A stretch of DNA of 64,000 nucleotides from Bigelowiella natans CCMP2755. Its lineage: Eukaryota > Protista > Cercozoa. The stretch is taken from assembly GCA_000320545.1 (NCBI GenBank), contig ADNK01002953.1:44284-108283 (forward strand), written 5' to 3'. Shown one piece after another: positions 4,470-45,975 of the stretch. The first letter of the stretch is position 1; each line of letters starts with the position of its first letter. The position numbers and the translations under genes are program-made. The notes under the pieces were generated by a model that saw nothing but the letters and a program-made list of their open reading frames with translations, made no database searches and was not told the origin of the DNA.

Positions 4470-4537
4470 CGGTTGTAGTGTGAAAAAGCTCTTTTGTAGC
4501 TCAGTAGTGACAATGTAACAATTGTGAGCATGGACTA

Positions 4538-5733
4538 CAGTGGCTTCATGCAATCAATCATTTTTGAAGAAGTTCATGATCAAAATTTGTCTGTCAGTTC
4601 GCTGTGCACATTGTTGCTCTGTCTGTTGCCCTGTGATTTGTGTGATCTGCTCTCCAAAAAGTTTCATGCCGTGTGAGCACCTTCATCATGTTCTCTCACA
4701 CACCACGCGCGATCAATGAATTGCCCGCCAGAAATGCCACACACACGCAGCAGTCATTGAGCAGTGATGTCCAACAACGAGTGGGGTGCGTTTTGGACGA
4801 GGGGCGGCATCCATCTTCACAACAGCTGAACTTTGACCCACGTTTCCAACGCCGAGAGCTTTCCTTCGCTCTGCGATGTTGTTGCAACACAATGTTGTGG
4901 AAATTGACGCAGCAAGACGAGACCGCGGTGCTGGTTCGTGTTTGTTTCACACACGAGCTGCCGTCTCTCTGGTCCGTCCCAGCGTCGTCCATCCACAGCG
5001 CTAGAGCACTGAAGCGACTGTGACTGTTCACACGACGTGGTTGTCCTCTTGCTGTCTTGCTTTTCCTTGTCATCGTGCAGCTGACCTGCCCTTCGTCTGG
5101 GTGGACCATTCGCACCAGCTAGCCAGCCCGCTCCCAAGCTAGCAAGGACATCGCCAAGTGCTCTCCTGTCCTCAGTCATTGGAACTTCACCACCCTCACC
5201 TTCCTTCTCCTCCAGCAGTGACTTGAGAGCGGAGCGGGCCTCTCATGCTCGTTGAATCATTGCGCAGAGATGTTTGGAAACGAAGAGGACAACATCGACG
5301 TGCGAAGGCGGACGCGGACCATCATCGTTTCAAACGATGGACACGTCACTCAACAACGCGTTTCCACGATTTCCGTGGGGATGTTGAAACTGTCCGAAGT
5401 GTCCAATGTGTGTCTGAAGATCACTTTGTCTCCCAGATTTTCCCGAAGGTGTCCGAAGGTGGTGTTCGAAGATTGACACACTGCGCACAACACAAGAACG
5501 TCCAAAGACAATTGTCCAAAGACATCCGAGGGTGTCCAACCACACCACCATTTTTTCAAATTTTTCTTGAATGTCAATTTCGTCTTGATTTGAATGTCTT
5601 ACTTCTGCACAATTGATGAACAAATTCAATTTGCAGATGGAAACGCCATGCATTTCGGCCCTTCCACTCACCTCCATTTGAACACTGCATTTTGCACAAA
5701 TGGCCTGCATTTCAGAAGCCTTTCACCATCGGG
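4538..5733. other. TpA-void tract, probably a hypermutated relic of a repeat or gene copy
   Basis: Manual scan finds only 4 TA dinucleotides (5002, 5120, 5140, 5600) in 1196 bp. The tract is rich in CA/TG and carries many overlapping ORFs on both strands because stop codons are lost. Confidence 0.8.
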
Positions 5734-6561: not shown

Positions 6562-7562
6562 TTCATAAAAAGTTGGCCCCCTATATATATTGGCTCTAAA
6601 GAACAGCTTCGCCCCAGCAATACGGAAAAGAAATCCCCCTTAGGAAGTGAGAGCATCATCCATATTATTCCTAAATTTGAGTCGTCGTATCAAGATATCA
6701 CGCCGAATTGGAACAACCCATCTCATTTCATTCTAGATGTTTCTTTTACACTTAGCACACCAGCTCAGTAATAGTGTTTTAGCCATGTATCCAGCGGTAC
6801 AGCGCTTCAAGACTTCAATTTGTTTAAAGAAATCCTTTATTATCATTCGCTATCGCGCCTGAAAGACTTGGAAGCATAGTCGGAAGCATAGTCCTAAGCC
6901 TAGAAACATACAATTTGCGAAAATAAATCATCAGCTGGCAGACACGGTACCAATATCTTGCTACAGTTGCCATGTTGTACGTCTTGTCCAACTCATCATT
7001 GCATCACTTCATCTTCCGTTGATACGGGTTACAAAAAGAAATACGCAAATATATCTTGGCACTAAAAGCTTGTATGTCGTATGCTTAAATTACTGGTGTT
7101 GTTCTGCAGTTAAGTGGAGCGAGTTGAGAGAGTTATGGACGGGGCAACGCAAACTAAAAATGGAGCGAGGTCCCTCTTGCTCGAGGTGGTGCGTAATAAC
7201 GCGATGAGCACGGACGCAGGCAGGCAGAAATGTAGCGTGCATGATGATGGCAACGACGTGAGCATGTGCTTTGCCACGCGATGTGTGCGTTGTGCAACAA
7301 CGCTAGAACAGTAAGCGCAAGATGACAATGCAGGCGCACGACTACTAGCTAGACTAGCTCGATGTGCCGGATAAATCAAACTACCGCAACCTGTCTGATG
7401 CTACATGATGGAATACATTGTGCACTTCACCTATGTTACTATCTATCTAGACATGCTGCTATGCACGGTCAAAGCGGTCAAAGCCATAGTCTAGTAGTCA
7501 TTGGCTGCAACAAAAGCAGGCTTCTAAGTATGTACATTCTAGCATTCTTCAAGCTAATTATG

Positions 7563-7843
7563 TCATTCGTCATCATCATCTGCTTCTCCCGCTCCAGTGA
7601 TGACTCGCAGTGTTTGAGCAGCCTCTTCGTAGCCCTGGTCAGCCGCTTCTTGAAACCAAAACTTGGCCTTTTCTACGTCCTTTGCTACACCGAGCCCTTC
7701 GTAATAGCAAGCTGCGATATTATTCTGGGCATCGGCGTTGCCTACGGATCGGTAAGGAAGGGCGTTTGATATGATATAAGCAAACAACAGGGATAAAACA
7801 ATGGACACACAGACAGACAGAGTTCCTCTCTTTACCTCAACGC

Positions 7844-7884
<41 letters not shown>

Positions 7885-8847
7885 TATATGTGTGTGTGTG
7901 TGTGTGTGTGTATGTGTGCGTGGTATACGTCGCGTGTACGTCGCGTGTTCGTCAGGTGTTCGTCAAGTGTTGCAGGAAATACAAGCATATATGCAGGGCA
8001 GAGCTAATCTCACGACGACTAGAACGTCATTCTACCGAGCCCAGCGGCCTTTTCCCACCAGCCCGCGGCCTGCTTCTGGTCTCTTTCATCAACACCAGCA
8101 CCCTCGTCGTAGCATATCCCAAGGTTATTCATAGCTGTCACATCGCCCAGTTCAGCGCCCTTCTGGTAGCACGTGGCGGCTGCTTTTGAGTCCTGGGGTG
8201 TCCCCCTTCCCTCAAAGTAGCAATCTCCAACAAGTGCATGGGCTGCTGGTAGGCCGAGCTCGGCCGCCTTTACACAGAGCTTGAAGGCCCGCTCCTCGTC
8301 CTGCGATGTGCCTATGCCACCGTAGTAACAGTCGGCCAGGGAAAGCATAGCTTCGGCGTTACCGCCATCAACCGCGCGCTTGTACCACTTGAAGGCCTTC
8401 TTCGGGTTAGGCTTGCTATCCTCCACGCCTACACCCTCCAGATAGCAGTCGCCTAATCGCGCCTGTGCGAGAGCGAATCCTTGCTTGGCGGCCTTACGGT
8501 AGAACTTAACTGCTTTACGGTGGTCGGGAGGGACAACGATCTTCTCTCCTTCTTGCTGCTTCTTCTTGGAATTCGCTATTAACTGGAAGCTGTGGTAGCT
8601 GTAACCCTGGAAGTGCAAGTCCCCAATTCGCATCTGTGCCTCAGGGGAGTAAGAAGGGCTGCTAGCTGCCTGTTTGTAACAGTATAACGCCTTCTCTGCG
8701 TTTCGAGCACATCCGATCCCTTGGAAAAAGCAATCTCCTAGCGCAATCTAGAGCCAGGGGGAGGAGGGGTAATGAGATGGGGTGGTGGGTGTACAGAGGC
8801 ACAAGATGAAGAAAACCAAAACTAAAGAGGAGGGAGAGACAAGATAC

Positions 8848-8904
<57 letters not shown>

Positions 8905-9321
8905 GCACACACACACAAATATTTTATTAACACAATACACAAAACATCTTATGTATTTCTCTTTTAAGACCTGCGCCTCGATATGCTTTCTTTCCGAGGC
9001 GGCGGTGTACCACTCTACCGCTAGCTTAGCGTCAGCGTCTACACCTTGCCCCAACAGGTAGCAGTCCCCAATTAGCTTCATACGCGTCGTGTCACCATTT
9101 TTCGCCAGCAGCAAGAAGTATTTGGCTGCCTCTTTGCGCCTGATACTTTGCTGCTCCTTGTTTTCTTCGTCGTCCGCCTCAGCGGCGCTGCCACCTTTCC
9201 ACAGGTATTCTGCAAGTTCGCTCATCGCTGCATTGTAGCCCATGTCCGCAGCCCGGCGAAGGCTGAGAGTTTGAATATATTGCTCGTGTGTGTGCGTGCC
9301 TGCGTTTGTGGATAGCTATTC

Positions 9322-9362
<41 letters not shown>

Positions 9363-9652
9363 TCTATTTGTTTCAATGCGTCTTTGTGAGCGATGCGACA
9401 TCTGCGGTAAGCTGTGTATGGACATACAATGCAATCCCCTTTTCCTCGTTAACAGGTACGGAAGGAGGGGCTCCCACAAGGTGGAGGTGCCCTAGAGCAT
9501 GGACGGCCTGAGGATCATCCTTCTCGGCAGCCTTTTCGTACAGAGCAAGCGCTCGGGCTGTATCCTTCTCCACTCCCTCACCACGGCAATAGAGCCTTGT
9601 GTCATGAATGAAAGTGTCTTAGTACGATGAGAATCAGAAAAAAAAAGACGAA

Positions 9653-9683
<31 letters not shown>

Positions 9684-11664
9684 GATAAAAGAGAAAAGAA
9701 GAAACACGAGATTGACAAAGAGGTAGATTTCGCTGTAAGGCCGATCCAGCCTCTCCTTGCTTCCCCCCTGAACTTCGCCTACTATTAGCACACTGTTACC
9801 CCGCCAAGAAGCTCTGCGCCGTTGTAAAATTGAGAAGTACAGCCCTCTGCAATAACTCGACTGCTTTCTTCTTATCCATGGCCACTCCATGCCCTAGCAG
9901 CAAGCATCGAGAGTAGTTGTATAACCCAGCGGCGCGAGCTGGTTCCTCTCCTTCTTCTTCCTTTTCTTCTTCTCCCTTCTCCTCCTTCTCCCCCTCCTTC
10001 TCTTTCCCCTCGCTTTCTTTCGTTGCTTCTCCTGCTTTGTTCTCCCCTGCTACGTCAGAAGCATCAGCTCTCTTCTCTCTTCTTCTTCCTCCGTCTCCTA
10101 TCTCCGCCGCTCGTTTATAGTGCTTTGCTGCCTCCTCATAGTCGACCTCTACGTCCTGCCCCCCGTGATAGTAGCAGTCGCCGAGCCCGTTGAGAGCTCT
10201 CGCGGTTGCAGCAATAGAGGGGGGCGACGACGATGAGGAGGGGGAGGAGGAAGTCGAGAAATAGGATGAGACACTCTTTCTCATGGCCTCAAGCGGTTGG
10301 GTGGTGCGAATGTGCGGCTCAGTCTTGTACGCGCGCTTTCTGCGACTCTCTTCCAGGTCAACGTAACGTTTCCGGAGAGTGCGGAGACGACTCAGCTCAC
10401 GCGTCAGTAGTTCCTTCTCATCGCCAGACTCGTCACTATCGTTCTCGCTGAGGTCGTCGATTCGAGCTTGTGCCTCCGCCTTCATCGCCGAGCGTTTCAG
10501 GCGAGCCCTACATGGTTTCGAGGATCACGCAACATCAGGGATGAGATTCCATTCCACACGACAAAGGACGGAGTCTATCCTGCCTCCAATGCGAAGGTTC
10601 GTATGTTTCTAGTATCTCTTCTTCTTGCTGTTGTTTGCACACTGTTGTTGTCACGATCGATTCGAAATCACACACGCAATCCTGTTTACACGCCATTCTC
10701 ATCATCATCCGACACCACCACCACCACCACCAACACATTAAAATGATGTCGATGAACATCACCTCTTCTTATCTTCAAGAGCGGCACGCTCATCCTGCAG
10801 GCTCTTCATCTCATCTTCTAGTTTTCTGGCCTTCTCTTCCACACGCTGCTTTTCTTCGTCGAGGCCAGCTCTGGTATCTTCGGCGAACTTCCGCTCCATA
10901 GCTGCCGTTTCCCTGCACTGCTCAGCAAACCGGCGCTTTTGAGAGGCGAGGTGCGCCTTTTCCTCATCCAGCCTTTTCCAGGCCACACAAATGTCGATTC
11001 TCCGAGCAATCTCAAAGAAGCAGGAGGGGGGGTGCTGCTTCTCCTCCGTCTGGGTCTGGCGTGTAGCCTTCTCCGACCCAGCACCAACATTCTCGTTTTG
11101 CTTTCCCTTCTTTCCCTCTAGTGATGCGCCCCCCTTCAGTCTCTCCTGCTGCTCCTCGGATTGATCTTTTGTCTTTTCTGCCGCGGCGGTTCCATTATTG
11201 GCCCCTTGCGTGTCTTCGGCTGTAGCTGCGGCCTGTTTGTTGAGGCGGTCCCTTTCCTCCTTCGCCTTTGCCAAAAGCTTCTTATACCTCATGGTCCAGG
11301 TCTAGTTAGTCGATTAGTTGTTGGGGGAGGGGTGGAGGAAGGGAAGGTGAGGGGCAGCGATGATGCTGATACTACGTGACCACAGGCGAAAGGGAAGTGA
11401 ATTTCTAGGAGAGCTGCTCGTAGATGAAGATGATGTGGATGTTTTCCCGTGAGTCCCGTCCTCCCCTCCAACCTCCTACTCTTGATTTTGATCATTAGTT
11501 ACCTGCGTGGTCTTCTTGGCCTCTTTTCTCTCCTTCAGGATGAGGCTCTTCAACTTGCCAATGTTGCCCTGGCTCTGGGGGGGGAAACGGAACATTGCAG
11601 GCATTAGGCTACGAGTAGAGAATGAGAAAGTGAGACTGAGACTCGGCGGAGGAGGAGAAAGGAG

Positions 11665-11711
<47 letters not shown>

Positions 11712-14700
11712 GAATTAAAAGTGGGGGGGAAATTATGTCTATAAGTAGGTTGGTTTGCTACGCAAGGTGCTTTGCGAGTAATACGAAGTTTACAACCACC
11801 TATTACTGTGTTACCTGCTTCAGCCTCGCCTCTAGTATGGCTACGACTCTCTTCTGCTTTTTCTGCTCGTTGGTGTACCCACTCTCCTTCCCCTTCTTGC
11901 TCTCATCAGTGGGACGGCTACCAGCAGCACTATTGCTCTTTGCACCCTTCCCTTTCGCGGCAGCAGCAGCAGTAGCAGCGCCAACAGGCACTGTGGTCGG
12001 GGTTGTTGATGGCGACGATGATGACTGTGCTGGATTTTTTTTGGCCAGCTCTTCCGAGGCGGTCTTCAGCTTCGCACGAAGTTGCGCGTTTTTCTTCTCC
12101 AGCTGCTCCCATTGCGTGGGCGCTCCGTTCTTTCGAGCTGATCCACCACACAGACAGACCCACCCAACGAGGAATGAACATCAACACTGAAACTTGCTGC
12201 GAAACCTCGCTATATCAGTCAATGCTATTACCAATATGTAAATATGTGTACGTATAAACTGTTTTGATGTGGTATGTCTGTGTGGAGCACAAACATATAT
12301 TTACCTTTAAATGCGGCGAGTACCCTCTTCAGCTTCTGAACTGCGCCTCGAAGCCGTGCGTTCTCCTTCTGCAGCCGAAAACAACACCGACGGCAGCACG
12401 CACGACACCAATGAGCATACTGTACACACTCAAACTCACACTCACACCACTCATTCAAGAGCTATTATTTTAGCTGCAGCTGCCAACATCTGAAAGCCAA
12501 AAGGATCGTGATCGGCTGATGACTTCTATGTGCTATTTATCAAATGGCTGTACACAGCGACAGACGTAGATAGTGTTGATTCAGCAATGATGTCGCGACC
12601 TTCAAGTCAGAGGCGCCAGCAGCAGGAGGACCACCACTTTTTTCATTCGATATCGTTCTCGTTTTCTTGTCTGTTGTTGATGTCGTCTTCGGCGTAGAAT
12701 CGACCTCGCCCCCCTTCTTCTTTTGCTGCGGCGGCTGCTTTGTGCCGCCATTTGTTTTCTTCTCCTCTCCACCCGCCCCCTTGCGCTTCCCCCCTGCCGA
12801 GGCAGGCGAATTTTTCACAGCTTTCTTCCCAGAACTTCCGCCCTTATTGTTTTTCGTGCTTTTGGTAGTGTGAGACTGCTTCTTCGAGCTACCACCTGTT
12901 TTGTTACGCTTGGTGGTGGTGGTGGTGGTGGTGGTGGTGGTGGAAGGTTTGGCTTTTGTCGCTTTTGTCGTCGTCGTCGTCTCAACTGCCTCGCCCTTCT
13001 TTTTCTGTGCTTTCCCTTTCCTAGGTCGGGGAATGGCCGACGATTTTGGTTTGGATGACTTGCTTTGCTTGATAATCTTGATGACGTCTTGTTTCTGCGT
13101 GCGCGGGGGAGGTAGGGGGGGGGAGGGAGGAAGCAGAGTTCTTAAAGGCACTGGGGATGCTGAATTGGAAGATTCAAAAACTGTAGTGTAGGCTGTTTCC
13201 TAGGAGAGCAGTAGAGCAGAGCGCACCGTTGTTTTTCGCACATTAGAAAATCTTATGAATTGCTATATTTCCCTCCTAAACTCTCTTTCTCTCTTTCTCT
13301 CGCTGTACTTGCTTCTTGAGACTTTCAACTTGTAACTGGAGCTTTTGGTTGGCTTCTTGTAGGCTTTCTGCCCTCTCCCCCTTCTGCATATACGAATTTA
13401 GTTAAGCGTACCGAGTTTAGCTACCGCCTGCTGTTCAGCATCTTTTAGCCATGTCATATACGCAACGAGCGGACAGGGTGAGAACGAGAGAGAGACGGAC
13501 GGAGGGAGGGAGGGAGAGAGAGAGAGAGAGAGAGAGAGAAAAGACGGGTAGACATCAAGAATACAGCTTTTGGACGCTATTCCTTATACACTTATCCAAT
13601 CACTATTACCGCTAGAAGGGTCTCTTGTAACCCTGCTATCTTCGCTTCCTAGGGAAAGAATAGAATCGTTGCGAAGGAAAAGACAAGTGGAAAGGGAGAC
13701 GGGTACCTTCTCCTCAAGCACGGATTCCCTCGTCACGAGAGTCTCGTTCAATTTGCTGATTTTCTCCTGGAGCTTCGTGCGCTCTTTGGCCAGCTTTGGA
13801 AGACGGAAGGAGGAGGGGCGATATCCGGCCAGGAATCGAAGCAAAGCAAAACATGTTATAAGGCTGAGTAATAGCAGTGATAGTGTGCATCATTGCGTAC
13901 CTTGTCCAGCTTCATTTCATCGTCAAGATTGAAACCGGCGGTATCCCTGAGCCGGAGGTTCTCCCTCTCCTAAGAAAGAGTCAGCAGCAGTGGTAAAGAG
14001 ATGACACAGGGGCAATTTCTGCCTCATCCCTCTTTCTCTCCTAAGGGGAAACACCGTCCTGTTTTCAAAGCTTTTATTTTGGGTAATACCGTCACTTCCA
14101 GGCGCGTCTGCAGCGAATGCAGCTCCCTCTTGAGTCGCTTTGACTGTCGTTAGAAGTTGTAGAATATTGTTATAGGTGCAAATTCTGGGGGTGGTAACCA
14201 GTGCTGCTGAGCTACTGCGGATATGGCTGCACGAGTGGTTGTTTGGGACATGTACACACCGACACATACACGCGCGCGCGCGCGCGCACACACATACACA
14301 CACACGCACACACGCACACACGTACGCACACTTCCGCACGTAAGCCTTCGTCATGTAAGTTCCTAATCTCAAAGAAAATCAGCAAGGATATGTTCGACCT
14401 GCGCGTGCAGCTCTGACTGTGTGCGCTTGGACAGCTAACCGTGGCAAATAGACAGGCTCAGTGTCGTCATTGGTGCTTACTAGCAATGTAGGAGAGCGTC
14501 TTAACATCTCAAGTTCTATCGTCTCTACGCACCCGTAAGGTAACAGCGGAAGTCTTCTTCACACGGCCGATCTCATAGATAAGACGACGATTCTCCTTCT
14601 CCACCTGCTCTCGAACACGCACAAATGGGCATAAGAACCGCTCTCACACATCTCGAAAGCACATGCGTAGAAGATCACACGGAAAGCAACCAAAGTATTG

Positions 14701-40344: not shown

Positions 40345-41088
40345 CTAATGCCACGTTATTCTAGATATTGCTGGCAGGTGCAGCCATGATGGCCAGTTTG
40401 GGATGTAGTTGTAGAAGAAATTTCTTACCCTGTTCTTCAATGAGTAGTCTATCGCATAAATTAGCAGCGCTACTAAGATTGCCTGTGCTAGTACCCTGAA
40501 GAAAGAATAAACTGAGGTCGACAACTTTTTCGATGTCGTAACTGTTCTTGTGATCATTCTCTCTGCCATGTCAAGCTGCTCGGGATCAAGATCTTGGAGC
40601 GTCGAGAAAGCAAGCTTTAGTAGAGGATTGCCAGCTGATGCTTCTTCAAGGCTGTTATAAAATTCCTCGCGAATCGCATCGCAAGTCGTGACATTATTCA
40701 ACCCTTCTGTTAGGCTATCAAGTTCGTCCTCAGAGAGGAAGGCCGACATGAGGGCACGATTGTTCAACAACCGCTTCAGTATCTTCCAGACCTCTTGACC
40801 ATTTTCCCCACGCGGTGTACGATGAGCGCTATTCTCTTGTCCCACAAGGTTGGTTCCTGCCCTGTTCTCGATCCTGCTCCATCTCTCGGTGCTCTCCATT
40901 CGGCGCTCCGATTTCGTCTGCGCGCCCATCGAACCCTCACTGCGATGAAGGTGAGGAGCTGCTGCTACAAGAGGAAAGTCGCTGGAGAATACGTAATCTG
41001 GGGGATTCTCTTCGTTTGTTAAGGAGGGCGTCTTTGAAGCATCTACATAGGAGACGACACAAAAACAATGTGAGTTACTGGAACTCAC
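40345..41088 (-). CDS. Hypothetical protein with a C-terminal transmembrane segment
   Basis: 247-aa open frame of normal composition ending in VLAQAILVALLIYAIDY. The 5' end probably contains an intron acceptor (ctatgtag). Confidence 0.55.
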   Translation of the reverse strand: MSSSNSHCFCVVSYVDASKTPSLTNEENPPDYVFSSDFPLVAAAPHLHRSEGSMGAQTKSERRMESTERWSRIENRAGTNLVGQENSAHRTPRGENGQEVWKILKRLLNNRALMSAFLSEDELDSLTEGLNNVTTCDAIREEFYNSLEEASAGNPLLKLAFSTLQDLDPEQLDMAERMITRTVTTSKKLSTSVYSFFRVLAQAILVALLIYAIDYSLKNRVRNFFYNYIPNWPSWLHLPAISRITWH

Positions 41089-41495
41089 TTTCGAAGCACT
41101 TCAATGAAGCACACAGATAGAACACTTATATAAATTTGTTTGATCGCAGCAACGCCCTCGTCGTTTCTCCTATCGATCGTTTTATGTCTCCTTTGCAGTA
41201 CGCCGGGCCTGGTACCATCCCCCCCCCCCCCCCCCTCCCGTTTGCTGCATTTCGGAAGCAATTCGTATTCGTTTCCGTATAGAATTATGGGATATTATAG
41301 GGTGAATACCTAAAAGTATTTTTCAGGAAAGTAGTAGTACCTCGAAAACTTTTGTTCCTCTTTCCGAATTCGACGTCCACTATCAGTTGAATTCAGGGCT
41401 AAAATCTGTCTGATTTCCTCCAGAGGGAATCAGCGAAATGCAGCTACATTTCATCCTAAAAACGGACATAAATTTCACAGTGCGACAAGCATAAA

Positions 41496-42425
41496 ATGTA
41501 TGTCGCAGTAGACAGGGAGGATGAAATCACTCGTAAGCCAAATCCGAATCCAAATCAACTCGACGTGAAGATGGAAACCAAGGGGGGACAGGTCGCCGCC
41601 ACCAACTCAAGGAGCAGTGGTTCTCCCTCTGCCTTTAACCACGAAGGCCGCTACTTCGAAGCGACCAAAAAAACGACCACAGTTCATAGCAAGATTAGTG
41701 TTGCCGACGGCATCCCTCCACCTCCCCCTCCACCGCCTCAGGTGCCTCGAAAGATATCGAACGCTGCTCTTCAGAGCTCAAGAACCTCCCCTTCATCATC
41801 TTCAACAGCATCCTCAACAACACCATCATCTAAACTTTCGAATAACAACAAACACAAATCATCACTCGCCGACGAGCTGGCCAAGAGGCACTCCAAGCTC
41901 AAGAAGGTACCACGAGGGGAGATCAAAATCACGCCCGCTTTCAGTCCCCCTGACGACAGGCCAATAGAGTCGTTCGGCGATGCCCTCTACATCGGCACTA
42001 TACACGCAGCAGGCAATAGCTCAGCACTGAGAGAGATCGGAATAACGCATATTCTCACGTTGTGTCCCGAGCGAACGCCAAAGAGGCTGAAAGGCGTTGA
42101 ATACGACACCGCCGTGTTCATGGACAAAAAGGATGCGCTCACACAAGATATGCTGGAGTCACTTGTCCGCAAGATCGATGCTACTTTGGAGGGGAAAGGC
42201 AATGAGATGACGACGCAACGTGGAGGCTCCTGCTGCCGCTGCAAGCTGCTCGTCCACTGTCTTCACGGTGTGTCGAGATCTGGAACTGCGTGCATTGCGT
42301 ACATTATGGCAAAAACCGGGATGAGCTTCCTTGAGGCGTGGAGAATGATGAAGAAGAAACGTTCCGTGGTCCACCCAAATGATGCTTTTAAGAAGGTTTT
42401 AATGACTTTCAAGCTGCGCTTGTGA
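41496..42425 (+). CDS. Dual-specificity protein phosphatase with N-terminal polyproline and WH2-like actin-binding motif, intronless
   Basis: Intact P-loop VHCLHGVSRSGT, with LYIG...GITHIL and RSVVHPN..F motifs. Upstream are PPPPPPPP and SSLADELAKRHSKLKKV. Confidence 0.92.
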   Translation: MYVAVDREDEITRKPNPNPNQLDVKMETKGGQVAATNSRSSGSPSAFNHEGRYFEATKKTTTVHSKISVADGIPPPPPPPPQVPRKISNAALQSSRTSPSSSSTASSTTPSSKLSNNNKHKSSLADELAKRHSKLKKVPRGEIKITPAFSPPDDRPIESFGDALYIGTIHAAGNSSALREIGITHILTLCPERTPKRLKGVEYDTAVFMDKKDALTQDMLESLVRKIDATLEGKGNEMTTQRGGSCCRCKLLVHCLHGVSRSGTACIAYIMAKTGMSFLEAWRMMKKKRSVVHPNDAFKKVLMTFKLRL

Positions 42426-42438
42426 CATGATGACAATG

Positions 42439-42664
42439 AAGAGGGCGAGGAAGCATGGAAGATGATGCGACAAGAACAACCTGCTCCCATTGCTCCGCAA
42501 GTGAAGATCTGCCCAAATGGACGTGCCGCAGAGAGAATCAATCAATCGCACACACTGCTACGAGGTGGCAATGGCTCAAGAAGGGAAAATTCACCAATGC
42601 GCTTTCATCAAATCAGTGCCCACTCTTGTTGAAAAAACGAACGGAGATCACCGCTCTCCCCTCC
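42439..42664. repeat. Orphan duplicate (same orientation) of 53262-53487, an intron-exon-intron piece of the zeta-toxin-like gene; TpA-depleted copy
   Basis: 226-bp ungapped alignment with 18 mismatches. It still reads IFTCGAMGAG on the minus strand. Confidence 0.95.
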
Positions 42665-43112
42665 AGGTGAGAGGCCTTCTGTACGAGACGACTAGCTACC
42701 ACAGCTTTCCGTACCCAGGTGAGAGTTCAATCAGCAGATTCCGCACGGCACCGAACACACGTTTGCATGCCTCAGGAGAGAGGCGTGGCTTTGATAGAAC
42801 CAATCGATACGTCGTACAAAACTCAAGTCAAGACTGGCGAGGGCAAGTACCACGCCGATGTCACCGATATGCAGCTACTGGCGTTATGGAGTGCTAGCAG
42901 CGCTAACGGACTCACATCAGAGCTTTGCGGTGCAAGGAATCCGCATTATGTCACGGACATCAAGAAGGTCGTCTGCGGTTCTGCATAGTATTGCGGGGAG
43001 GGGAGCGCAGAGATTTCATTGCCATTCACAATAGGAGACCTCAGGATCTTCGTGAATGGCTCCCAGCATTGTGTCTCGCATCAACGTCTTTAGTTAAAGA
43101 AATATTATATAA

Positions 43113-43148
<36 letters not shown>

Positions 43149-43324
43149 TTATTTACATTTCATATGAGGACACACATTCACACAGATACGATAGTATATA
43201 CTTATGCATTGCGAGATGCTTTGTGACAAACCATCTCTGGGGACATCGGTAATTTGTTAATTAGCTTCCAGTACGTCTCCCCCCTACCCCAGTCACCAGC
43301 ACCGATCTTTGATACAGACATATG

Positions 43325-43386: not shown

Positions 43387-43431
<45 letters not shown>

Positions 43432-43658
43432 ATATATATATGATTGAAGTATTTATAGTAATTCAAACACCGTACCGCGGGTTATGATAATTGCTATTTA
43501 AGCTCTCACTACGATGGATTTTGCTATAATTTCCTGGATATTTAATGATATTGATGACCCCTTCCGGAGGGATGGCATTTATTGGTCTATTTCCAACGAT
43601 GGACACGCCCTGATGATGATGATGATAATGATGATGATGATGATGATGATTGGTATAG

Positions 43659-45438
43659 ACAAAACAAAGAAAGTAGAAGCGCAAATAGCTGAAACTCAAA
43701 AGGAAATCCAGGCGAAGGAGGCAAAACTGGAGGAAACGATAAAGAAATTCGAGGAGGCAACCCAAGGTTATTAATTCTGTTAACATCTGAGGAACAATCG
43801 GTGTGCTGAGATATTTCTGCGTGTGTGTTCAGCCATGGAAATAGACGAAAGTGGGGGGGTGATTTTGACAGAAAACGCTGCCGGAGAAGACTATGCCGAA
43901 GCTCTTGTTGAAGCAGAAAAGAGAGAGGCTGGCGATGCGAAAATCTCCAAATTCCTGCCCATGATGCTACTGACAGTGTGCACGGTATTCATCCCTGGTT
44001 TCACCGAAATTGCGAAGGAAGAAGCAAAGCGCATGAAGGACAAGAAGATTGAAGGCATTCTTATATTTGGTAGAAGGTGTTTTCTTCAAGTTTTGAAGGA
44101 GTTTCGTCGACTCCGCAAGGAATACATCAACGGTGCAATCTTGAGATTTTGTATACTCGCGGGACAGAGTGGAATTGGCAAAAGCCTGGCATTTTCCCAG
44201 ATTTACATGCGAGAAGCCTTTATCCAAGGGGAGAAGGTGGCGTTTTACTCCGTTCGAGAGGATACAATTTACCTGTTTCGGATGGAAGGTGGGAAGTACA
44301 CCTGCCAGCAAGCGAATGTCAGAAGCAGTGATTTTTGGGAGTCAAGGGCGTGGAAAATGTTTGATGACAGATCAGCACATTTGATTATAGACCCGGCTCC
44401 AAGCCAAGGTCACAAGTACTTCCAAGTGCATTTAGTGGAGGCCTTCGTGGTGTACTTGACCTCTAAGAACAGCGAACTGAGCAGTTTCGAAAATGTGATC
44501 AGAGGTGTTAGAAGGAAGAGACTCTTTGTTCCGACATTGGCCATTGAGGAGTCCAAGGTAATAGCGACCGAGCTAAAAGAGAAAGAGAGTGTGTTTTTAG
44601 AGAGATTTCAGAGAACTGGTGGACAGCTGCGGGATTTCATTAGTGAAGAAAGATACAAACTTTTCGAAGGTGACCAGGATGAAGCTTGGGCAGGAACAAA
44701 AAAGATGGAACACATACACTTCGGAGATTTGAAAGTTTCAAGCAGAATATTTTCGGTCCAACCTTCCACTACTGATGAAACACTTTACAGTGAGAAATAC
44801 GTCATAGTTCCACAAAGCGAATGGATTAAAAGCAAGATATTCCAACTGTATGCAGAGAAGAATCTCAAAAGTTTCACCGGATTAGATGGCGAGAAATGGC
44901 TCTTTGCTAAAATTTACAAGGGTTGCAAGCTTCTCGCTAGACGTCTCCCTAAGAAGCTAGCAGACGCTGAAAAAAAAAAGAGAATGGTGATTGGGAAGAC
45001 AAGATTCATGAGTTCCCTGCTCACTCAACTTTGAAAACTTTCTCGAACGGCGTGAAAGGCCAGATAGACAAATGCCGAGCACACATCAAGAAGATAGCTG
45101 AGGATCAAAAGGCGGAACTTGTAGTGTGCCCGACAAACTATCCGGCCATCGATGGAGCAACAAACTGCCGAACACTGTATCAAGTTACGATTAGCAGCAA
45201 GAAGTCCGTCGGCAAAGCATACGTTGATGAACTGATTTCATTCGGTGCATCAAAAGCGGAGAAAGCTCGAGTGTTTTTCCTTGTCCCCGAAAAAATAGTA
45301 GAATCCTTCAGCATTTCGTTTGCGAAAGACTCTAAAGATGATGCTCTCAAGCTAGCAGAGTTCTGGGTTGTTGGCATCAATTTGATTGAAATGATTGAGG
45401 ACGCACAGAAGAAGAAAAGCAAGATCACGGCTAGCTAG
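43659..45438 (+). CDS. Crinkler/RHS-like protein (coiled-coil header, P-loop NTPase, PD-(D/E)xK-type REase), interrupted by a -1 frameshift at an A10 run
   Basis: The coiled-coil exon 43659-43766 splices to 43833. Walker A is CILAGQSGIGKS and Walker B-like is HLIIDP. The second frame (45031-45438, open from 44971) has CPTNYPAIDG..LYQVTISSKKSV, typical of CR-REase domains. One extra A in 44970-44979 would fuse the two frames. Confidence 0.8.
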
Positions 45439-45762
45439 CAGCTTGACATTCTGCGGTGGATGTAGGCGCGATGCTCTGCTGTGGATTTTGCCATGTCATT
45501 TTCAACAAAGATTGTTTTCACAAAACACATGGGATGTGCCTGTGATTTTGCCATGTCACTCTAGCAATTCAGTTCAGCAGTAGGCCGTCAGTAGGCAAAT
45601 TTTCATGTTGCGCATTTGTTCGCAGTTTTTGCCACTGATTGTTGATGGGGCAATGAAATGTGGGGCATGGCACATGGTTCTGCTGCGCATCTGTCTGGCA
45701 TTTGTGTCTGGCATTCATTTCTCACACATGGCTAGCGCAGACAGCACAGAAAGAAAGCGAGG
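45439..45762. other. Second TpA-poor tract, directly after the Crinkler-like stop codon
   Basis: 5 TA in 324 bp (45463, 45562, 45581, 45592, 45733), all followed by G. Confidence 0.65.
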
Positions 45763-45975
45763 TATCTGTGGAGGCTCCACATGAAAATGAGACTGCTGCA
45801 TGCATGAAACGGATGTAATGAACATGTTAATTTTTGTCAATTGTCATCCCTACGTAGCTATGCAAAGTTGCGGCTACTCTGCATGTGCGGAGCTCATGTT
45901 GTGCGTCATATGCAGTGCAAGTATGCCTGTCCGGTGCTGTTCATATCTCCACATCTCCTAGGCAAACTTGATGAA

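Follow-up and report, generated by a model that had tools for sequence, protein, structure and literature searches.

Two copies of a 238-nt repeat in the nuclear genome of the chlorarachniophyte alga Bigelowiella natans CCMP2755 differ chiefly at positions where a TpA in one copy faces TpG or CpA in the other, and we consider it probable that the copy at 42 kb has been driven almost to saturation by a TpA-specific A:T to G:C hypermutation process of this species, while the copy at 53 kb keeps the ancestral sequence. The pattern of differences is real and far from chance. In the sequence of events that we favour, the 53-kb copy would be ancestral except for a few ordinary substitutions, and hypermutation in the 42-kb copy would have turned TpA into TpG on one strand and into CpA on the other. 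Both copies lie in the window analysed here, a stretch of 64,000 nt that corresponds to JGI Bigna1 scaffold 86; its GC content is 46.4% and TpA makes up 5.5% of its dinucleotides, compared with 44.9% and 6.0% given for B. natans by Mettrop et al. (bioRxiv 10.64898/2026.01.13.699255). The initial annotation of the window had proposed an undescribed genome-defence system. The process, its comparison with RIP and a deaminase hypothesis have, however, been public as that preprint since January/April 2026, and since TpA hypermutation is already described for the same genome, the central claim of novelty fails. The contribution of the pair of copies lies in a paralogue that gives the unmutated state at each site, against which 12 of 13 TpAs are seen to be converted, and in an indication that the process is able to affect a tract as short as ~0.25 kb and without obvious viral character.

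Pairwise alignment of 42439-42664 with 53262-53487 extends over 226 nt without gaps and with 18 mismatches, at 12 of which the 53-kb copy reads TA and the 42-kb copy TG (nine) or CA (three), exactly as first annotated. Counting also reproduced the accompanying observation that all but one of the TpAs are missing from the 42-kb copy while CpG is retained: this core holds 1 TpA and 11 CpGs in the 42-kb copy, and 13 TpAs and 9 CpGs in the 53-kb copy. BLAST lengthens the pair to 42427-42664 and 53250-53487 (238 nt, 22 mismatches, gapless, E 8e-91), and over this full length 16 of the 22 differences are of the TA versus TG/CA type (TG 9-12, CA 3-4), the TA standing in the 53-kb copy every time. TG-type and CA-type changes are intermingled along the 42-kb tract. 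In the 12-nt extension, TGATGACAATGA of the 42-kb copy lies opposite (TAA)4 of the 53-kb copy, the last four units of a (TAA)n microsatellite at 53230-53262 (plus strand) that form the left end of that copy. This juxtaposition had been annotated and is seen as described; its first TGAT, however, is native flank of the dual-specificity phosphatase (DUSP) gene upstream and is also found in an independent contig, L002, so that the conversions in the flank number three and not four.

The TpA-depleted copy thus occupies 42427-42664 on the plus strand, with homology not common to L002 starting at ~42432, and its one remaining TpA is at 42559 in the context GCTACG. The TpA-retaining copy, at 53250-53487 on the plus strand, is non-coding, of normal composition and holds 17 TpAs when the 12-nt (TAA)4 flank is included, of which 15-16 are lost from its counterpart. 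It is surrounded by microsatellite-rich non-coding DNA of an ordinary intergenic kind and lies 10.8 kb from its mutated paralogue. The two copies are the only dispersed repeat of this sort in the window, in which no third copy was found even by sensitive search. Neither copy appears to encode a structured RNA, as their folding z-scores against shuffled sequence were -0.49 and +1.46 and Rfam gave no match.

A tandem array at 56676-59961 (plus strand), with ~735-nt units of 92-98% identity, served as internal control. It comprises ~4.5 units, each encoding a repeated cysteine- and tryptophan-containing module and a Ser/Pro-rich linker, and a Pfam search with the units gave no match. Its mismatch spectrum is ordinary and TpA loss is absent (Rho_TpA 0.72). 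Between array units, 12 of 58 differences exchange TA for TG or CA or the reverse, compared with 16 of 22 in the focal pair (Fisher p 3.5e-5), and their direction is split 5:7 in the array against 16:0 in the pair (binomial p 3e-5). Such a one-sided excess over the control indicates that the pattern is the product of something acting on one lineage only. Ordinary divergence of two old copies, with the excess at TA arising by chance or from a normal AT-biased transition spectrum, can draw on the fact that changes of this type do exist in the background, where they make up 21% of the mismatches in the array and number 11 among the mismatches between a Crinkler-like (CRN-like) gene of the window and its relative on contig L001. 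In the focal pair, however, they constitute 67-73% of all mismatches and run in one direction throughout, and with a context test (5e-7 to 5e-5) adding to the Fisher and binomial results we rejected this explanation, to which we attach a negligible probability. The depletion also stands out by density, with a window mean of 12.3 TpA per 226 nt and only 1.4% of 226-nt windows holding one TpA or none, these being confined to four places of which the 42-kb copy is one.

It is just as improbable that the 42-kb copy is an artefact of assembly or sequencing. A homopolymer-length problem does occur nearby, at an A10 run at ~44968, but both copies have unique flanks, an independent Logan contig supports the left flank of the 42-kb copy as far as 42431, and the differences between the copies are context-specific substitutions, unlike the indels or collapsed repeats that are typical of misassembly.

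Which of the copies changed is a separate matter. The compositional outlier is the 42-kb copy, with a Rho_TpA of 0.07, a CpA+TpG value of 1.37 (1.37-1.43), a TA/AT ratio of 0.06 and a (CA+TG)/(AC+GT) ratio of 2.16. The 53-kb copy is normal (0.99, 0.88, 0.85 and 1.23, respectively) and resembles its own flanks; the window as a whole has a Rho_TpA of 0.76, a TA/AT of 0.73 and a (CA+TG)/(AC+GT) of 1.25. If the ancestor had been like the 42-kb copy, random G:C to A:T transitions would have created TpA 32% of the time, as compared with the 12 of 14 observed (p 5.5e-5), and the reverse direction would further need a strand bias of TG over CA, with TG sites hit four times more often (9/16 versus 3/21, p 0.012). 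Such an ancestor would moreover already have been void of TpA, so that a RIP-like process would be needed on top of TA loss. Searches for an outgroup or further copy of the 238-nt repeat found none, whether by scanning metagenome and viral contigs for exact patterns, by a metagenome scan guided by the DUSP protein or by exact look-ups of 16 open reading frames of the window. For this reason polarity is inferred and not proven; the evidence for it, from a single pair of 238 nt, consists of composition, parsimony and the direction that has been published for the process, and on these grounds the best reading is that the 42-kb copy is probably the one that lost TA.

The same polarity had been put forward in the initial annotation, and that conclusion is the best supported, although one argument given for it was wrong. 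The 53-kb copy was said to contain, in frame, a Walker A exon belonging to an apparently intact gene; on translation, however, each of its six frames is interrupted by stops, and the GxxxxGK[ST] motif is absent from the copy, the nearest resemblance being its only glycine-rich string, GAMGAGYS on the minus strand, which is without GK[ST]. The only real Walker A motif nearby is GQSGIGKS in the gene at 43.6-45.4 kb.

The opposite polarity, in which the TA-poor 42-kb sequence is ancestral and the 53-kb copy gained TpA through a RIP-like C to T change at CpA (G to A at TpG), was our early leaning and was dropped after analysis of the composition, the RIP indices and the preprint. The pairwise pattern is by itself symmetric and hence compatible with classical RIP. 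However, the 53-kb copy falls outside the RIP indices, with a TA/AT of 0.85 (below 0.89) and a (CA+TG)/(AC+GT) of 1.23 (above 1.03), and is in line with both its flanks and the mean of the window. The ancestor that RIP requires would itself be a TpA-void sequence in the 1.4% tail, for which a TA-loss process would be required anyway, and the strand bias noted above would have to be accepted as well. To our knowledge, RIP is confined to fungi. Finally, a CpA to TpA process does not appear in the accessible part of the mutation-accumulation spectrum of B. natans (Mettrop et al., 10.64898/2026.01.13.699255). Taken together, we regard this direction as very unlikely.

For TA loss, by contrast with RIP-like gain, a process of the required direction has been observed in real time in this species. 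Mettrop et al. (10.64898/2026.01.13.699255) followed 15 mutation-accumulation lines of B. natans and found two integrated viral regions that mutate ~1000-fold faster than the remaining genome; of 231 hypermutations 230 were A to G or T to C, essentially all at TpA (TpA to TpG or TpA to CpA). For scaffold 10, the rows seen of their Table S2 list 211 mutations, 210 of them A to G or T to C and nearly all in NTA/TAN context. Their main target, an NCLDV region of 186 kb, is reported as single-copy. The authors already proposed the analogy with RIP and an adenine deaminase, with the ADAT2-like Bn78255 as candidate, a gene that does not lie in our window. From composition together with these data from the same species, the best reading is that the 42-kb copy was subject to a context-specific process changing A:T to G:C at TpA, as had been suggested from the sequence alone. 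The preprint counts 124 hypermutated clusters, using 1-kb windows, clusters of at least three windows and a CpA+TpG threshold of 1.52; scaffold_86 is not among the supplementary-table rows listed. At the level of the tract, the Rho_TpA of the 42-kb copy (0.07) falls within these criteria and its CpA+TpG (1.37-1.43) below 1.52, and as the thresholds are defined for 1-kb windows the tract never passes them there. The published number of clusters therefore probably understates the extent of the process, a tract of ~0.25 kb being below its scale of detection.

The numbers of the preprint also allow an estimate of the time needed. The 211 mutations over 3132 generations and 6169 TpAs (Mettrop et al., 10.64898/2026.01.13.699255) amount to ~1.1e-5 per TpA per generation, at which rate the loss of 12 of 13 or 16 of 17 TpAs takes ~2.3-2.6e5 generations. 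For the six differences outside TpA (2.7%), the baseline rate of 3.46e-10 implies ~4e7 generations. With ~2.5e5 generations set against ~4e7, a short episode of hypermutation is sufficient.

The 42-kb copy is embedded in a TpA-void tract at 42401-42681, 281 nt with one TpA, which is bracketed by retained TpAs at 42400 and 42682. The edges of the tract are 26 and 18 nt from those of the repeat, and normal TpA density resumes directly to the right. The window holds two further tracts of this kind. The clearest, at 4537-5733, has 4 TpA in 1.2 kb (Rho_TpA 0.05, CpA+TpG 1.54) and sharp edges; another, at 45439-45802, begins just past the stop codon of the CRN-like gene and is TpA-poor and CpA+TpG-rich (Rho_TpA 0.23 and CpA+TpG 1.85 over 45439-45762). 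Both reach the index values of the preprint, as defined for 1-kb windows. Neither has a partner copy within the window, and Pfam searches with open reading frames inside the void tracts gave no match. The CpA+TpG enrichment of the 42-kb tract below 1.52 and a target not recognisable as virus or transposon count against the hypermutation reading, and so does the sequence that is spared, namely the 53-kb copy, the interval 42682-43000 and the (TA)n runs ~450 bp away. These long microsatellites, at 43100-43160 and 43390-43440, are intact ~450 bp from the void tract, which means either that hypermutation is very local or that microsatellites regenerate TpA quickly. A TpA-free stretch of 238 nt at 11973-12211 (Rho_TpA 0.08 and CpA+TpG 1.42 in a 250-nt scan) lies in a GC-rich, low-complexity open reading frame and may reflect hypermutation or mere composition. 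We also observed that all three void tracts start at, or no more than 70 nt from, the stop codon of a plus-strand open reading frame or gene (stop/start pairs 4469/4537, 42425/42427 and 45438/45439), which places them in 3' flanks or 3' UTRs. The voids are not a general property of 3' UTRs, because the 3' flank (~7000-7560) of the Sel1-repeat gene has normal TpA; this multi-exon gene, or genes, occupies 7560-10490 on the minus strand, and its exon at 8019-8633 is 100% identical to a protein, P0001, that occurs in UniParc/Metaclust only.

The TpAs that survive in the three void tracts (n=10; 4537-5733, 42401-42681 and 45439-45762) are not a random sample, since 5 of the 10 are CTAG (p 1e-5) and 8 of the 10 are NTAG (p 7e-5). 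The preprint points the same way: our hand tally of the scaffold 10 rows seen of Table S2 (10.64898/2026.01.13.699255) gives strand-collapsed 3' neighbours of the mutated A of 67 A, 67 T, 52 C and 20 G, so that TAG is mutated about half as often as the window background, used as a proxy for the viral region, predicts (20/206, p 2e-4). The text of the preprint is silent on context beyond TpA. A 3' G thus seems to be protective, with the palindromic CTAG the last context to be lost, and CTAG and GTAG as the most refractory contexts would constrain the candidates for the enzyme.

The 42-kb copy begins 2 nt past the stop codon of an intronless DUSP open reading frame at 41496-42425 (plus strand; Pfam DSPc 6.5e-20), to which the proteins P0079 and P0229 are 100% and 99% identical. 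An exhaustive HMMER search with the phosphatase led, by way of a 90% cluster, to Logan contig L002 (SRR31805821_123469, 1737 nt), which matches 40807-42431 of the window at 99.6% identity as far as the stop codon and a following CATGAT. Beyond this point L002 continues with 60 nt of unrelated sequence of normal TpA content, and its last 55 nt match 45803-45858 at ~85% (window versus L002:1617-1737); a match of its tail to the flank of the 53-kb copy was considered and discarded as not above background. As L002 is without the repeat element, it does not show the ancestral bases. It does demonstrate that the DUSP gene can occur without the DNA that holds the 42-kb copy. The segment missing from L002, 42432-45802 (plus strand, 3.37 kb), starts on the left with the repeat copy, continues with the (TA)n microsatellites and the CRN-like gene and ends on the right with the second TpA-poor tract. 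Since it is absent from a contig otherwise 99.6% identical, the 42-kb copy may be inserted DNA. In the 53-kb copy, moreover, both the (TAA)4 and the CT-rich terminus extend beyond the repeat as longer tracts of similar sequence; in combination, these observations weakly suggest insertion of the 42-kb copy, as an excerpt, downstream of the phosphatase gene. No terminal repeats above a shuffled null were found between the ends of the 3.37-kb segment, and neither these nor Pfam and Rfam searches gave any sign of a viral or transposon origin of the 42-kb target.

The CRN-like gene within this segment (43613-45438, plus strand) encodes a P-loop protein and corresponds to JGI Bigna1 protein 144297 (aug1.86_g19005); its open reading frame 43835-45034 is 100% identical to EukProt jgi/Bigna1/144297. 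Against its 92.8%-identical relative on contig L001, coding differences show a TA asymmetry of 9:2, with TA in L001, and we therefore considered hypermutation of the coding sequence itself; amino-acid outgroups make the state in the window ancestral at informative sites, from which it follows that this coding sequence is not hypermutated. Separately, in the region 44960-45060 the A10 run shifts the frame relative to P0064 and P0065, homologues that are read through without interruption, and the JGI model of 144297 spans the shift by a 65-nt 'intron'. Programmed slippage seems less likely here than an error in homopolymer length or a true frameshift.

Whether duplication triggers the mutator is a further question, as the initial annotation had the process acting on duplicated DNA. 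Repeats could be recognised by homology as in RIP, or via small RNAs, and subsequently be mutated at TpA, and this idea fits the void tract, whose edges deviate by just 26 and 18 nt from those of the duplicated segment and which has normal TpA directly outside. As a general rule, however, it does not hold: only one of the two copies is mutated (16:0), the tandem array is spared in spite of its 92-98% identity (12/58, direction 5:7, Rho_TpA 0.72), the 1.2-kb void tract has no second copy in the window, and the 186-kb target in the preprint is single-copy (10.64898/2026.01.13.699255). The coincidence of edges is equally well explained by insertion of the 42-kb copy as a piece marked as new DNA, and may thus reflect targeting of that piece rather than the sensing of repeats. 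Triggering by duplication is for these reasons unlikely. We would entertain, with considerable reserve, the idea that the unit sensed by the mutator is the individual inserted or duplicated segment, resolved to a few tens of bases and of any origin, including ~240 bp derived from the host; recognition could then proceed via homology, small RNAs or an insertion mark. If this idea should prove true, the 42-kb and 53-kb copies would be a natural after-and-before example of a functional analogue of RIP with adenine-directed chemistry, and the coincident edges of tract and segment already constitute a concrete lead to the targeting mechanism.

On the basis of the window and the preprint together, the process is a heritable change of DNA, A to G in 5'-TA on either strand, that is sharply local and episodic. 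It could be brought about by deamination of adenine on DNA by an enzyme of the ADAT2/TadA type, and the targeted unit may be the inserted or duplicated segment itself. The natural substrate of the ADAT2/TadA family is tRNA A34, which is always preceded by the invariant U33, and this would explain the TpA rule. The interleaving of TG-type and CA-type changes argues against a single edited RNA or a single-strand intermediate and favours duplex DNA that was hit repeatedly.

The system described by Mettrop et al. shares with our tract the organism, the change from TpA to TpG and CpA on both strands, the combination of low TpA with high CpA+TpG and the sharply regional extent. The 42-kb tract differs in being only ~0.25 kb long, and so invisible to 1-kb windows and the rule of at least three windows per cluster, in not being recognisably derived from a virus or transposon as the targets of the preprint are, and in its location directly behind the stop codon of a host gene. 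In addition, its unmutated paralogue supplies the state before mutation, making near-saturation (12/13) visible site by site, and survivors are mostly CTAG or GTAG, an effect of the 3' G that is also present in the accessible part of Table S2 without mention in the text of the preprint. What may be new is the ~0.25-kb scale, the refractory CTAG, a target that is not recognisably viral, edges shared with a duplicated or inserted segment and the position at the end of a 3.4-kb segment absent from L002.

RIP in Neurospora and other fungi resembles the process in its dinucleotide-specific transitions, in a mutated tract confined to the duplicated segment and in its presumed role in genome defence. 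It requires a premeiotic stage and cytosine methyltransferases homologous to RID/DIM-2, and its chemistry is the opposite, as C to T at CpA creates TpA while A to G at TpA in B. natans destroys it. RIP usually affects both copies as well as tandem repeats, whereas in B. natans one copy of the pair is changed and the array is spared, and the RIP indices (TA/AT > 0.89, (CA+TG)/(AC+GT) < 1.03) describe neither the 53-kb copy (0.85, 1.23) nor the 42-kb copy (0.06, 2.16), in which they are reversed. The cytosine deaminases APOBEC3 and AID, known from retroelements and kataegis, likewise produce clustered, context-specific hypermutation of an enzymatic type in foreign or newly synthesised DNA; they act by C to U in TC/CC or WRC contexts and their clusters are strand-coordinated, unlike the interleaved changes of the 42-kb tract. 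A related outcome is produced by ADAT2/ADAT3 and TadA, acting on tRNA A34, and ADAR, which hyper-edits dsRNA: all convert A to I, read as A to G, with a preference for a 5' U/T, and ADAR too favours a 5' U. Their edits are made in RNA and are not heritable, while in B. natans both strands of the genome itself are changed, and ADAR prefers a 3' G, the very neighbour that is disfavoured in the B. natans tracts.
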